A stretch of 64,000 bases of DNA from Macrostomum lignano (GCA_002269645.1 NIVC01000486.1:310001-374000); one strand, 5' to 3'. Positions 40,601-59,436 are shown, counted from the stretch's first letter. Notes: generated by a model from the sequence alone, not told the origin. Made by a program: numbers and translations.

Positions 40601-43600
40601 TCGGGGCCAGCAGAGTCTATCGGTTCGTGTTCAGCCGGACTCAGCAGGTTGGTTGGTGTGCTTGGAATTTGATGCTGACTATCTTGAGCTCAAAAGGTAA
40701 TCTAGAGATGTGCTCAGGTGATCTAGAGCCGTGCTCAAAAGGTAATCTAGAGGCGTGCTCAGGTGGTCTAAAGACGTGCTCAGGTGATCTAGAGACGTGC
40801 TTAGGTGATCTATAGACGTGCTTAGGTGATCTATAGACGTGCTTAGGTGATTTAGAGACTGCTCAAAGGGTAGTCAAGTGCCGTGCTCAAAAGTTTATCT
40901 AGAAACGTGCTCAGGTGAACTAAAGACGCGCTTAGGTGATCTAGAGACGTGCTCAGAAGGCGGTCTAGAGATTGCTCAGAGGTGACATAGAGACATTGCG
41001 GTAGGGTGTCATAATCAGGGTGTGTCTACTAGTGGCGCCAAGCAGGTGTCCCTAGCGCCACTCCAGTGTATCCAGTAGCGCAATGTCGCCACACACGCGC
41101 TCTGTGACCGTAGAAAGGTTTCCAACTCTGCATCGATGATGCAACAGTTACGTCCTCTCGCCTCTCCTCCCATGCACACCCGGCAGGTCCGCCGCTTCAC
41201 CCTGGACGCCATCCAGCGCCGCATGGGTCTGGACCGGCGGGCCATGGTCGACCTGGCGCTCATGTGCGGCTCCGACTACACCGACGGCGTCGCTGGCCTC
41301 GGCCCCGTTACCGCCATGGAGATGCTGGCCGAGTTCGGCACGGCCGACAATCTTCGCCGCTGGCTGGACGAAAGCGTCAGCGACGGCGGTCGGCAAAAGC
41401 GTCGGGACTCGCTGACCCCGGCCAAGGTCAAGGCCCTCCGGCTCGAATTTCCCCAGAGTTTCCCGTCGGCTCGCGTTGCTAAGGCCTACATGCAGCCGGC
41501 CGTTGACTCCGCGGTCGGCCCGGGGGCTGGCGGCTTCGCTTGGGGCCGCCCGGACCTGGACTTGATTCGGCGATTTGCTGCCGACCGCATAGGCTGGAGC
41601 CGGGAGAAGTGCGACGGCGTCATGTTGCCGCTGATGCACCGAATCAACTCCGCCAAGGTTTGCCTGGGGCGATTCTTATTGGCTGGCGATTGTGGGGCAG
41701 TTCTTATTGGCTGGCGATTGTGGGGCAATTCTTATTGGCTGGCGATTGTGGGGCGATTCTTATTGGCTGGCGATCGTGGGGCGATTCTTATTGGCTGGCG
41801 ATTGTGGGGCAATTTTTATTAGCTGGCGATTCTGGGCAATTCTTATTGGCTGGCGATTGTGGGGCAATTCTTATTGGCTGGCGATTGTGGGGCGATTCTT
41901 ATTGGCTGGCGATTGTGGGGCGATTCTGGCTGGCGATTGGCGATTGTGGCGCGATTCTTGTTGGCTGGCGATTGTGGGCAATTCTTATTGGCTGGCGATT
42001 GTGGGCAATTCTTATTGGCTGGCGATTGTGGGGCGATTCTTGCTGGCGGTTTTCAGTGAACATTGTGATTACCTAACCCTAGCGATTATTGGCAACAAAC
42101 GATTGCAATTTAATTTAATTCAAAACTTTCCCGGTTAAAAAAAAGACGGTCGCCAAAATGGCTTGCGACTGTTCATTCCGCGACCGTTGGTCGACCGTAT
42201 GTCGACCGTTCGTCGACCGTTGCCTGTCACGCGTCGACCGTTGATTTTCGACCGTCGTTTTCGTCGACCTTTGCGACTAACAATGCGACCGTTTGGGGAC
42301 CTACTCCTGCGACCGTTCCTGCGACCGTCCATCGACCGTTCCCACGACCGTCCATCGACCATTCCCGCGACCGTCCATCGACCGTTCCCACGACCGTCTA
42401 TCGACCGTTCCCACGACCGTCTATCGACCGTTCCCGCGCCCGTTCCTGCGACCGTCCATCGACCATTCCTGCGACCGTCCATCGATCATTCCTGCGACCG
42501 TCCATCGACCGTTCATCGACTGTTCCTGCGACCGTTCATCGACCGTTCCTGCGACTGTTCATCGACCGTTCATCGACCGTTCCTGCGACCGTCCATCGAC
42601 TGTTCATCGACCGTTCCTGCGACCGTTCATCGACCGTTCCTGCGACCGTTCATCGACCGTTCCTGAGACCGTTCATCGACCGTTCCTGCGACCGTTCATC
42701 GACCGTTCCTGCGACCGTTCATCGACCGTTCCTGCGACCGTCCATCGACTGTTCATCGACCGTTCCTGCGACCGTTCATCGACCGTTCCTGCGACCGTTC
42801 ATCGACCGTTCCTGCGACCGTCCATCGACTGTTCATCGACCGTTCCTGCGACCGTTCCTGCGACCGTTCCTGTGACCCGTCCTGCGACCGTTCGTCCTCC
42901 TTTCATCGACCGTTCAGCGACTGTTTGGATTGCTCCGGCGACCCTTCGTCGCCCTAGATCGTATTGTATTCTAAAAGTCTAAAAATGAAAAAAAGCGTGT
43001 AAAGACGGAAACTTTCTTTCGCTACTAATTATTACTTTCGACAAATTGAAGATTTAACGCGTCGAAAATGTAGGAAGCGTAGACAGTGTAGACATTCTTC
43101 CCTGTTTATTTTCTACTTTTTGTTATCAATAATACCAAAAAACAAAAACATTTGCGTATATAAACGAAGCGCATAAAGGAACAAATGCCAAAGGAGTGAC
43201 AGAGAAGTGGCCAGACGGAGGGGAGAGATGAAATTGTAAGATGGGTATTTTAGGTTAATGCAGTGCTAAATGCTAAACGCCCAGGCGCATGTGTCTCGCA
43301 TTTTCGGAAACTGCACGTTCAAATTCGTGTGAGCAAGTAATTAATAGCTACATACTTCACGCTGCTCGCGAACATTTGTGACACTAATTATAACTACTGC
43401 TTTAACTGCTATAACTGCTACTGCTATAACTATAACTATTGCTGCTGCTATTTTACCCACCACGGCTGCTCCGTGTTGGGCAAGTAGCATAAATTTTTAA
43501 ATATCGAGCTGGTGCTAGATTTAATGTAGGTGGAGTAAGGGAAAGAAAAAACTGGTGCTCACATTGCCCAAGTAGGAAATTGCCACGAGCAAGTGTTAGT

Positions 43601-58600: not shown

Positions 58601-59436
58601 TCGAAGTGGAGGGACGGTGGACGGTGAAACCGTGGTGGGAAAAACGGTCGAAAGAGTGGTCGATAAAACGGTCGACGGACGGTCGACGAAACGGTCGACG
58701 GACGGTCGACAGAACAGTGGACAGAACGGTCGACAGATGGTCGCAGAGACGGTCGCCGAGATGGTCGACAAGACGGTCGACAGAACGGTCGGCAAGCCGG
58801 TCGGCAAAACGGTCGACAAAACGGTCGACAGACGGTCGCAGAGACGGTCGCAGAGACGGTCGCAGACAAGGTCGCAGAGATGGTCGAAGTAACGGTCGCA
58901 GAGACGGTCGCAGAGACGGTCGCAGAAGAACGGTCGCAAAAACAGTCGACGGAACAGTCGCTACCAACGGTCGCATGCCACGGTCGCAAGAATTAGTCGC
59001 ACAGTCGCACACATCGACCGTGCAGAATGGTCGACTACTCGGTCGTTCACATGGTCGCATCCGGCGACCGTGCTTAACGGGCGCTGGAATGGTCGCAATA
59101 ATAGTCGACGCCGGCCATCACGGTCGCAGGACGGTCGAGGGCCCTGAAATGCGACCGTTATTTTTTTAACCGGGTTTTGCACCCCGCCAGACCCAAAGTC
59201 TACTCGACCAATTCGTGATTCGCTCCTGGCGCAGCCAGTCGGAGGCGGCCGCCGCATCCGCAGAGATCAGCGCCTCGGCCGGCCCCAAAACTGTCGGCGG
59301 AGGCAACAGCCGCAGGGTGGGGGCGGCGGCGGGCCGGCTGAGGCGGAGGCAGCGGGGCGATGAGGCGGCGGCTGCTGCGGAGACCCCGGCTGAACGCAGC
59401 CCGGCCAGAAAGTCCTCGCGCAGGAGAAAAAAATGA
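34641..59436 (+). CDS. ERCC5: XPG/ERCC5 (Rad2) structure-specific endonuclease; 7 exons, about 944 aa
   Basis: Exons 34641-34728 ([10 protein letters not shown]...KVLAI), 36654-36823 (DVSLWLNQ...KPVFVFDG), 37659 to about 37934, about 38436-39824 ([20 protein letters not shown]...[10 protein letters not shown]), 40453-40647 ([10 protein letters not shown]...[12 protein letters not shown]), 41187-41657 (H3[22 protein letters not shown]) and 59191-59436. All catalytic acidic residues are present. The exon 3/4 junction has two plausible alternatives. Confidence 0.93.
35185..36345. repeat. Compound (GTCT)n/(GCCT)n microsatellite (XPG intron 1)
   Basis: Direct reading; recurrent CTTAGT interruptions. 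Confidence 0.97.
37010..37445. repeat. 21-bp purine-rich minisatellite (XPG intron 2)
   Basis: Unit GTGGAGGAGAGATTAGACAG(A/G). Confidence 0.93.
38110..38414. repeat. (AGAC)n microsatellite (XPG intron 3)
   Basis: Reverse orientation of the GTCT family, with ACTAAG interruptions. Confidence 0.95.
39847..40330. repeat. Adjacent 32-bp and 20-bp minisatellites (XPG intron 4)
   Basis: TTGTGTCACACCTGCACCTCACATTGGCACAG (about 4-5 copies), then CACACCAGCATCTCATGTAT (about 16 copies). Confidence 0.92.
40690..40990. repeat. Degenerate 21-bp minisatellite (XPG intron 5)
   Basis: Unit approximately GGTGATCTAGAGACGTGCTCA. Confidence 0.8.
41665..42045. repeat. 28-bp minisatellite at the start of XPG intron 6
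   Basis: Unit GGGGCGATTCTTATTGGCTGGCGATTGT, starting a few nt after the donor at 41658. Confidence 0.93.
42160..42930 (+). repeat. Left subterminal repeat array of the EnSpm element (CGACCGT core)
   Basis: Dozens of CGACCGTT(C) cores in units such as CCTGCGACCGTTCATCGACCGTT, directly inside the left TIR. Confidence 0.9.
44478..44690. repeat. (AG)n/(AGAC)n microsatellite inside the transposon
   Basis: Direct reading. Confidence 0.95.
45007..46790 (-). CDS. Coiled-coil + BEN-domain protein (transposon accessory gene), with two apparent 1-nt frameshifts
   Basis: ATG at 46790. An aromatic beta-rich segment ([17 protein letters not shown]) is followed by a coiled coil ([10 protein letters not shown]...AAEYRKAYE) and a BEN-like block, [22 protein letters not shown]...[16 protein letters not shown]...NLRSRKK. 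Donor GTGAGT at 45523 and acceptor CAG at 45337 are phase 0. The last exon 45336-45007 is acidic/Ala-repetitive. Frame changes occur near 46660 and 46423-46426. Confidence 0.65.
49096..50966 (-). CDS. F-box / leucine-rich-repeat (FBXL-like) protein, about 540 aa, with two apparent 1-nt frameshifts
   Basis: The N-terminus [35 protein letters not shown] is a typical F-box. Cys-containing LRRs follow ([56 protein letters not shown]). Exons 50966-50301, 50153-49707 and 49597-49096 have GT-AG phase-1 introns. Frame changes occur near 50853 and near 49387-49398. Confidence 0.82.
53905..57478 (-). CDS. EnSpm/CACTA-type DDE transposase (spliced)
   Basis: Exons 57478-55557, 55381-55190, 54921-54606 and about 54465-53905. 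The first two junctions are clean GT-AG phase 2; the last acceptor is less certain. Motifs: CxxC...CxxC zinc ribbon; NVDGFPVF (first D); [11 protein letters not shown]; FDAPQRA (second D); [11 protein letters not shown]; CYLH (C/D-x2-H); [21 protein letters not shown]; YNAH; FGPI...FES (E); IHGSRHV. Confidence 0.88.
58550..59150 (-). repeat. Right subterminal repeat array of the EnSpm element (ACGGTCG = inverted CGACCGT)
   Basis: Repeated ACGGTCGA/ACGGTCGC cores leading up to the right TIR. Confidence 0.9.
59191..59436 (+). CDS. ERCC5: Terminal exon of XPG (PIP-box-like motif and basic NLS-like tail), 17.5 kb downstream of exon 6
   Basis: Acceptor ccgccAG at 59188-59190 is phase 0, matching the donor at 41658. 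It encodes TQSLLDQFV (compare human XPG TQLRIDSFF) and ends RKSSRRRKK-stop. Confidence 0.85.
   Translation, partial: TQSLLDQFVIRSWRSQSEAAAASAEISASAGPKTVGGGNSRRVGAAAGRLRRRQRGDEAAAAAETPAERSPARKSSRRRKK

Follow-up and report, generated by a model that had tools for sequence, protein, structure and literature searches.

What is the 17 kb of DNA that separates two exons of an XPG/ERCC5-type nuclease gene in the flatworm Macrostomum lignano, and can it still move? The locus was studied in a window of 64,000 nucleotides (GCA_002269645.1 NIVC01000486.1:310001-374000), by which we mean the whole stretch of DNA analysed; positions are counted from its first letter and + denotes the strand as given. We consider it quite likely that positions 42130-59174 are a single inserted cut-and-paste element of the CMC (CACTA/Mirage/Chapaev) superfamily of DNA transposons, from a clade with the terminal motif CCCGNTKRAAAA. 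In this reading the copy combines an intact transposase gene with frame-disrupted F-box/leucine-rich repeat (LRR) and BEN genes, and is an ageing copy that needs helpers in trans.

The segment is a single bounded element with 24-nt inverted ends that start with CCCGG. The left terminal inverted repeat (TIR; 42130-42153, + strand) reads CCCGGTTAAAAAAAAGACGGTCGC and fits the clade consensus; the right TIR (59151-59174, - strand) has the reverse complement CCCGGTTAAAAAAATAACGGTCGC. The two are identical at 22 of 24 positions and mismatched at the other two. The first 14 nucleotides, CCCGGTTAAAAAAA, are found at only two sites in the window, the two ends in inverted orientation, where 0.29 matches would be expected by chance with up to two mismatches allowed. 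The plant CACTA terminal motif is not present at either end. Directly outside the TIRs we read TTT on both sides; that on the left (42127-42129) is a putative target-site duplication and equals that on the right (59175-59177). The TTT pair is consistent with the duplication made by the CMC superfamily.

Inside the TIRs sit two arrays of the heptamer CGACCGT. The window holds 77 copies of the heptamer where 3.85 would be expected, and 75 of the 77 are inside the element. The left subterminal array (42181-42913, + strand) contains 48 copies at 11-12 bp spacing, arranged as a 23-bp double unit. The right array (58575-59137, - strand) contains 23 copies, which read ACGGTCG on the plus strand and are thus inverted relative to the left array. 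Each TIR also holds one extra copy, in the opposite sense to its array. This is the layout of a classic TIR transposon with predicted subterminal binding-site arrays, and it is well past chance. An earlier sequence-only reading of this DNA had described an element with intact ends, TIRs and subterminal arrays. The matching TIRs, the TTT flanks and the two arrays of opposite orientation bear out this description.

The element is one of five that form a clade, the others being carried by one flatworm genome contig (L002) and three marine or environmental metagenome contigs (L001, L003 and L004). The clade with CCCGNTKRAAAA termini is previously unnamed. Its terminal consensus was derived from the ends of four elements (that of the window, L001, L002 and L003), and analogous arrays with distinct motifs are seen in L001, L002 and L003, so that the subterminal motif differs from element to element. 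L001, from a marine metagenome, measures 9947 bp. Its 22-nt TIRs (CCCGCTGAAAAAATCGTCCGGT) are perfect and its arrays consist of TCCGGTT/AACCGGA; it encodes an intronless transposase and two downstream open reading frames (ORFs), which include the accessory gene discussed below. L003 and L004 come from one JGI metagenome and have the accessory gene directly after the transposase. L003 ends in ...TTTTCCAACGGG, and ACGTAAY motifs cluster in the preceding 400 bp. L002 is M. lignano contig NIVC01002297.1, the species being taken from the UniRef entry of an encoded protein. This element spans ~13.9 kb and has a 14-nt TIR (CCCGATTGAAAATC) and, at both ends, GTCGGCACT arrays with a 12-bp period. The longer array lies at the accessory-gene end in L002 and in the window element. 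The gene order in L002 is transposase, F-box/LRR, BEN, as in the window element. The sequence-only reading had named beforehand, as an outcome that would refute it, that no other copy would join F-box and BEN genes with this transposase. L002, bounded by TIRs and subterminal arrays of its own, carries all three genes in an unchanged order and so answers this test in favour of the reading. The transposases of the two elements are about 50% identical, and similarity is confined to the protein level in the three genes; at the nucleotide level only (AG)n microsatellites are shared. These microsatellites are inside both elements at differing positions (window 44477-44685; L002 14232-14302 and 18742-18841).

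Contigs L022 and L023, which encode more distant homologues, end short of the element ends and of the neighbours. A metagenome scan with the clade alignment gave 77 pattern matches, none of which was confirmed. The subterminal dimer CGACCGTTCCTGCGACCGT was found in a metagenome scan on 17 contigs, mostly G+C-rich, none of them with a transposase, a TIR-like end or a mirrored array. These contigs were therefore rejected as relatives and are regarded as chance matches. An Rfam scan of the window found no RNA family. Look-ups of exact protein sequences gave no match for a 641-aa ORF, the receptor ORF described below, P0004 or P0152.

The transposase gene occupies 53905-57478 on the minus strand, with exons at 57478-55557, 55381-55190, 54921-54606 and 54465-53905 (996 codons). 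The four coding blocks were set by tblastn with protein P0001, and the junctions were then read. P0001, from a Tara Oceans contig, is the sole homologue found by word search and is 41% identical to the window transposase. The spliced coding sequence of 2991 nt has no internal stop. The three introns (175, 268 and 140 nt) are all canonical GT-AG introns, in phase, with the borders GTAAGT...GCAG, GTAAAT...CCAG and GTGAGG...TTAG. The transposase gene of this copy is intact. We note that the introns (55556-55382, 55189-54922 and 54605-54466) are absent from L001, L003 and L004; at least the first two are absent from L002 as well, where the flanking coding blocks are contiguous. The three introns look like lineage-specific gains in this comparison. 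The N-terminus of the transposase carries acidic tandem repeats of ASDAE units with a 15/27-nt period (56844-57326), and the same region of L002 (10265-10690) carries a different, 60-nt repeat.

A profile made from the window transposase and P0001 retrieved 6869 homologous proteins in an exhaustive search. Of 40 sampled homologues, 30 match PF02992 Transposase_21 (tnp2), with a best E of 3e-18; other Pfam matches are to DUF1258 (17/40), DUF4218 (2/40) and Plavaka (2/40). Because three quarters of the sample match Transposase_21, placement of the window transposase in the CMC superfamily is supported, by transitive homology at the profile level. Its relatives match both Transposase_21 and DUF1258, a mixture that would be compatible with the EnSpm, Mirage or Chapaev subgroup. 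All 17 of the invariant or near-invariant family columns that were checked are retained in the window protein (C326, C329, C341, C344, D421, G484, D511, C530, C533, G592, H617, G622, E685, H758, H763, G772 and E783). Among them are the putative catalytic residues Asp-421, Asp-511, Glu-685 and Glu-783, with both glutamates as candidates for the catalytic one, and the CxxC pairs and histidines as putative zinc ligands. In the close clade P0001-P0005 the motif PPCYLHQ replaces the common PDYMH motif.

The accessory gene is common to all five elements, in which it lies downstream of the transposase and has the same architecture: a small N-terminal domain, a CxxC motif with a long coiled coil, and a C-terminal domain with the pattern LR..R.VFT.EE....S.TG. 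In the window its main block (45473-46417, - strand; tblastn with the L002 accessory ORF, E 1e-7) comprises the CxxC, the coiled coil and the C-terminal part with the predicted BEN fold (~45473-45892). The N-terminal domain (46426-46665, - strand) was found by BLASTP to an L001 ORF (E 4e-9) and is in another frame than the block that follows it. An ORF at 44883-45374 on the same strand contains 33-bp repeats (tandem repeat 45060-45219) that encode RGRP units, matched by Pfam AT_hook (E 0.0023, 18 bits against a cut-off of 17.4). It is possibly a C-terminal exon of the accessory gene, joined to the BEN exon by splicing. An AlphaFold2 (AF2) model of the C-terminal 140 residues is mostly α-helical with about five helices (pLDDT 79, pTM 0.70). 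The ten best PDB matches in a fold search with this model are all BEN-DNA complexes or BEN domains (Bsg25A, Insensitive, BANP, NACC1 and BEND6), with probabilities up to 1.0, best TM scores of 0.66-0.71 and E no better than 0.01. The M. lignano homologues P0151 and P0152 are labelled 'BEN domain-containing protein' in UniRef. A profile of the BEN region (three sequences) searched against PDB sequences found no BEN domain and nothing relevant. The modelled structure nevertheless supports a BEN fold for the product of the third gene. The model of the N-terminal domain is a five-stranded barrel with a helix (pLDDT 76), whose best PDB fold matches are the Tudor domains of KDM4A and ARID4 (probability 0.97-1.0, E 0.07-0.2); we thus describe it as Tudor-like. 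We also note that P0004 (1314 amino acids) is a single predicted protein that combines a transposase with a coiled-coil/BEN-like part, either by a fusion of gene calls or as a real fusion.

Between the transposase and the BEN gene, in the window element as in L002, lies a gene of the FBXL type. It is located at 49096-50966 on the minus strand, in blocks 50966-~50866, ~50865-50407, 50223-~49700, 49595-49389 and 49389-49096. Pfam identifies the F-box at 50685-51110, with F-box-like PF12937 at E 1.3e-12 (47.7 bits, cut-off 24.3) and PF00646 at 36.4 bits (cut-off 20.5); its LRR matches are under the cut-off (24.8 against 27). After repair of the frame, the protein aligns to FBXL2 over 273 residues (3-275, E 4e-17) and also matches SKP2, FBXL5 and FBXL17. 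Using the ORFs of L002 (where the counterpart is at 15266-17368), tblastn located four further F-box/LRR blocks at 34-45% identity, with order and orientation preserved. A GTGAGT intron follows the codons for G-C-R at the same codon and in the same phase in both genes. L001, L003 and L004 are without the gene. L002 aside, its closest database match is to an F-box protein from a spider (E 1e-4). No host source gene was found in a word-indexed protein search, a weak negative as the search is limited to relatives that share exact 5-mers. The same-codon intron and the position are common to two elements that cannot otherwise be aligned as DNA, which points to the F-box/LRR gene being a conserved, old and retained component of the lineage and not a chance capture. 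Since similarity is kept at the protein level where the DNA cannot be aligned, the gene was probably inherited together with the element, with long-term constraint on all three genes. Two independent captures appear less likely than such co-inheritance.

The condition of this copy was assessed by comparison with the continuous ORFs of L002 and L001. In the F-box/LRR gene the frame shifts near 50860 (after RRWHEL), within the F-box itself, and again at 49389, where an extra TC gives CTC-TC-GAC in the window against CTC-GAC in L002. The accessory gene changes frame near 46415 (after ACLAILP) and, probably, near 46650. None of the four sites leaves room for an intron, and all are shifts in the same direction, -1. 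Programmed -1 ribosomal frameshifting was considered and rejected: there is no slippery heptamer near 50860, the sole site inspected for one, and L002 shifts elsewhere. A 35-nt GC-AG mini-intron at 46415 that would restore the frame was also rejected, as homology to L001 runs on into the putative intron. The sequence-only reading had proposed three spliced minus-strand genes. All three are present and the transposase is intact with its three introns, but neither the F-box/LRR nor the BEN gene reads as a clean spliced ORF. Its view of the element as young and possibly autonomous was not supported, given two frame repairs needed in the F-box/LRR gene, one and probably two in the BEN gene, and two differences between the 24-nt TIRs. 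The copy is probably not self-sufficient.

A number of points weigh against the reading of the locus as an ageing CMC transposon with a BEN-type helper. The element family of the window is sampled by a single copy. The TTT/TTT duplication is likewise one positive case in one copy, with a T-rich flank, and the two relatives with both ends available show no target-site duplication (flanks AAT/CCT in L001 and CAG/TCA in L002). The TTT that the sequence-only reading took for a duplication is thus present at both flanks, but its reading as a duplication rests on this one copy. Pfam gives no direct match to Transposase_21 or DUF4218 for the window transposase or for P0001 and P0002, and the proteins of the window, L001 and L002 give none to BEN (PF10523) even with E allowed up to 10. 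Of the profile searches proposed earlier, only that for the F-box therefore gave a direct match on the window proteins; the BEN gene is recovered by fold search, but not by Pfam, and its reading frame needs repair. The fold-search E-values of 0.01-0.2 are weak, and both models were built on alignments of three to four sequences. Three of the four frame changes fall in short homopolymers and may be errors of the assembly; the copy would then be intact. Finally, DNA binding by the BEN protein and the target of the F-box protein are argued wholly by analogy.

The question of assembly errors leads to the explanation that the copy is fully intact and autonomous, its F-box/LRR and BEN frameshifts being single-base errors of long-read assembly. 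All four changes are -1, and three are in homopolymers of two to four bases (AA, GG and CCCC), where one added base brings back the frame and gives exactly as many residues as L002 has; the F-box exon of L002 also needs a frame change, at a different position, and the TIRs and arrays are well preserved. The 3-kb transposase gene is however free of such errors, the gain of a TC dinucleotide at 49389 is atypical of a homopolymer error, and the TIRs have two mismatches. We judge real decay of the two genes to be substantially likelier than assembly error, and an intact, autonomous copy to be unlikely. A more drastic error, in which the ends belong to different elements or unrelated pieces were misassembled, could be suggested by the single copy seen and by a genome rich in tandem repeats. 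The ends, however, share 22 of 24 TIR positions and the same heptamer in mirrored arrays, the XPG reading frame resumes across the insertion with a short original intron, and L002 has the same layout, down to the longer array at the BEN-gene end. Such an origin is highly improbable.

It is also conceivable that the F-box/LRR gene stems from a single capture of a host gene and has been carried along passively, with no role in the life of the element, like the genes carried by plant Pack-CACTA and Pack-MULE elements. The gene is missing from three of the five elements (L001, L003 and L004) and is frame-disrupted in both elements that have it. Against this, it is a complete F-box and LRR coding unit with introns and no fragment, and it keeps its place and its orientation in two elements with about 50% transposase identity and DNA that can no longer be aligned. 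In divergence between these elements it is intermediate to the transposase and the BEN gene, as constrained co-inheritance would predict, and the word-limited protein search found no close host gene. We regard passive cargo as quite unlikely. The cargo role that the sequence-only reading gave the gene, taken as capture from the host, was not supported, as gene and same-codon intron are common to two elements with unalignable DNA and a host source gene was not found. The reading as a frame-disrupted CMC transposon from a lineage that retained the F-box/LRR gene is preferred.

With the gene content in hand, a mechanism can be proposed for this CMC transposon. The core would be two genes, one for a DDE transposase with an N-terminal zinc ribbon and one for the Tudor-like/coiled-coil/BEN accessory protein. 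BEN domains are sequence-specific DNA binders in PDB complexes, and for this reason the BEN protein is assigned the role of DNA binder. By analogy with TnpA of maize En/Spm, where the TnpA/TnpD scheme is established, it would bind the subterminal CGACCGT motifs, about one per helical turn, at both ends. Multimerisation through the coiled coil would then pair the two ends and pass them to the transposase, which would cut at the CCC termini and duplicate 2-3 bp on reinsertion of the element. Methylated histone tails may be what the Tudor-like barrel recognises. The likeliest role of the FBXL-type protein, by analogy with viral F-box proteins, would be to recruit the host SKP1-CUL1 ligase such that a host protein is marked for degradation to the benefit of the element. 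The window copy would be mobile only with helper proteins supplied in trans. The BEN domains of the different elements are 23-34% identical, and their pairing with element-specific motifs would fit co-evolution of protein and site. Taking the analogies further, the flatworm CMC lineage may long have kept an FBXL-type receptor of the SKP1-CUL1-F-box (SCF) ligase and may use it, much as certain plant and animal viruses use F-box proteins, to have a host factor of transposon control or of chromatin degraded by the proteasome, while the Tudor/BEN helper reads both chromatin and the subterminal motifs of the element itself. A DNA transposon would then encode a ubiquitin-based counter-defence, a scenario that we put forward as speculation and rate as rather doubtful.

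Maize En/Spm, one of the closest known systems, encodes the TnpD transposase (Pfam Transposase_21) and the DNA-binding TnpA, which are made by alternative splicing. The window element resembles En/Spm and the plant CACTA elements in its short TIRs, opposed subterminal arrays of a short motif, putative 3-bp duplication and large size. It resembles En/Spm also in having a transposase and a second protein, which in En/Spm binds DNA, and the transposases are homologous at the profile level. It differs in its CCCGG termini, in place of CACTA, and in the lack of a direct Pfam Transposase_21 match. The helper is a Tudor-like/coiled-coil/BEN protein that is unrelated to TnpA and comes from a separate gene, not from alternative splicing, and the window element and L002 carry an extra FBXL-type gene. 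The Mirage group was defined in Caenorhabditis elegans and makes 2-bp duplications. A likeness to Mirage/Chapaev is seen in the DUF1258 matches of 17 of the 40 sampled homologues, DUF1258 being a Caenorhabditis family. TIRs that start with CCC have been reported for the animal 'TRC' relatives of CACTA, including SmTRC1 of Schistosoma mansoni (DeMarco et al. 2006, PMC1636069). SmTRC1 is about 4.5-5 kb long with 54-bp TIRs and one predicted ORF, and shows a 2-bp duplication in only 7 of 14 copies (PMC1636069). The window element is, like SmTRC1, a flatworm element of the CACTA superfamily with TIRs that begin CCC; its subterminal arrays, BEN gene and F-box gene have no counterpart described for SmTRC1. 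The EnSpm assignment of the sequence-only reading therefore stands only at the level of the CMC superfamily; the CCC termini match the animal TRC elements and not CACTA proper, and Pfam Transposase_21 and DUF4218 give no direct match.

The protein encoded by the F-box/LRR gene has the organisation of FBXL2, SKP2, FBXL5 and FBXL17, in which the F-box is followed by cysteine-containing leucine-rich repeats. Unlike these host receptors it is very divergent, and its gene is inside a transposon. Proteins of elements and viruses that act on host control are known: VANC of the VANDAL Mutator elements, polerovirus P0 and the poxvirus ankyrin/F-box proteins. Viral F-box proteins bring about the destruction of host defence proteins by taking over SKP1-CUL1. 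The window element would be comparable as a mobile element that encodes a putative actor on host control systems, a comparison made by analogy only.

It is the conserved and unusual architecture, with its BEN/Tudor-like helper and retained FBXL gene, that is new here; the CMC superfamily is known. To our knowledge, animal CACTA-type elements have usually been described as single-gene transposons. Full-text literature searches, within the library searched, turned up neither a BEN-type helper nor an F-box/LRR gene described for any lineage of DNA transposons. The five elements of the clade share a terminal motif, have element-specific subterminal motifs and carry a BEN/Tudor-like helper in the place of maize TnpA. 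They provide a testable case both of convergence on a two-protein transposition machinery and of co-evolution between BEN domains and binding sites. More unusual is the retention of the F-box/LRR gene, which, if functional, would mean a DNA transposon that uses the host ubiquitin system. Such use has, as far as we know, so far been a hallmark of viruses.

The insertion site may have consequences of its own. The XPG/ERCC5-type nuclease is encoded on the plus strand, where Pfam matches XPG_N at 34542-34781 and 36575-36829 and XPG_I at 40438-40812. A helix-hairpin-helix region follows at 41079-41819 (Pfam 5_3_exonuc SAM fold, E 1.3e-5). The exon upstream of the insertion is within this region at 41079-41700 (+ strand); its end is approximate and was placed by what we take to be the equivalent point in human XPG. 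The last coding exon (59191-59433, + strand) is an open frame, TQSLLDQFV..., with a PIP-box-like start, a basic tail and no Pfam match. We presume that it is the PIP-box exon of XPG from its resemblance to the human C-terminus (QTQLRIDSFF...). Its 3' splice site AG is at 59189-59190 and is preceded by a pyrimidine-rich stretch. The transposon thus sits in an XPG intron, antisense to the gene and 16 nt upstream of the splice acceptor, in agreement with the sequence-only reading, which had it nested in XPG. The intron was about 0.5 kb before the insertion, and the empty-site allele is predicted to read ...caaaacTTTtgcaccccgccag. Most of this short intron to the left of the insertion is occupied by a 28-bp tandem array of 13.5 copies (41665-42041). 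In the region of the right TIR (59151-59190) we observe a T-run and TTAAC, a potential polypyrimidine tract and branch point. Judged from these motifs, XPG splicing may be dependent on transposon sequence, and with the insertion so close to the acceptor the XPG repair gene may be affected too.

The XPG gene is flanked by two long arrays of the 39-bp tandem repeat AGATTAGCAATCCATTCTATTCCTGCATCCTTGTGGGCT, at 33000-34555 and 59658-60647; in the scanned part of the right-hand array (59658-60000) the matches are 100%. Its introns at 35100-36460 and 38000-38430 contain long simple repeats of the GACA/CAGA type, which translate as TDRQ or CLSV runs. Adjoining XPG is a gene on the minus strand for an OTU1/YOD1-type deubiquitinase (61538-62804) with UBX-like, OTU and C2H2 zinc-finger parts. 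Like this gene, two others in the window mark the host as an animal, a RUN and Rubicon-homology gene (21867-25282, + strand) and a rhodopsin-type G-protein-coupled receptor encoded by a single ORF (28557-29816, - strand).

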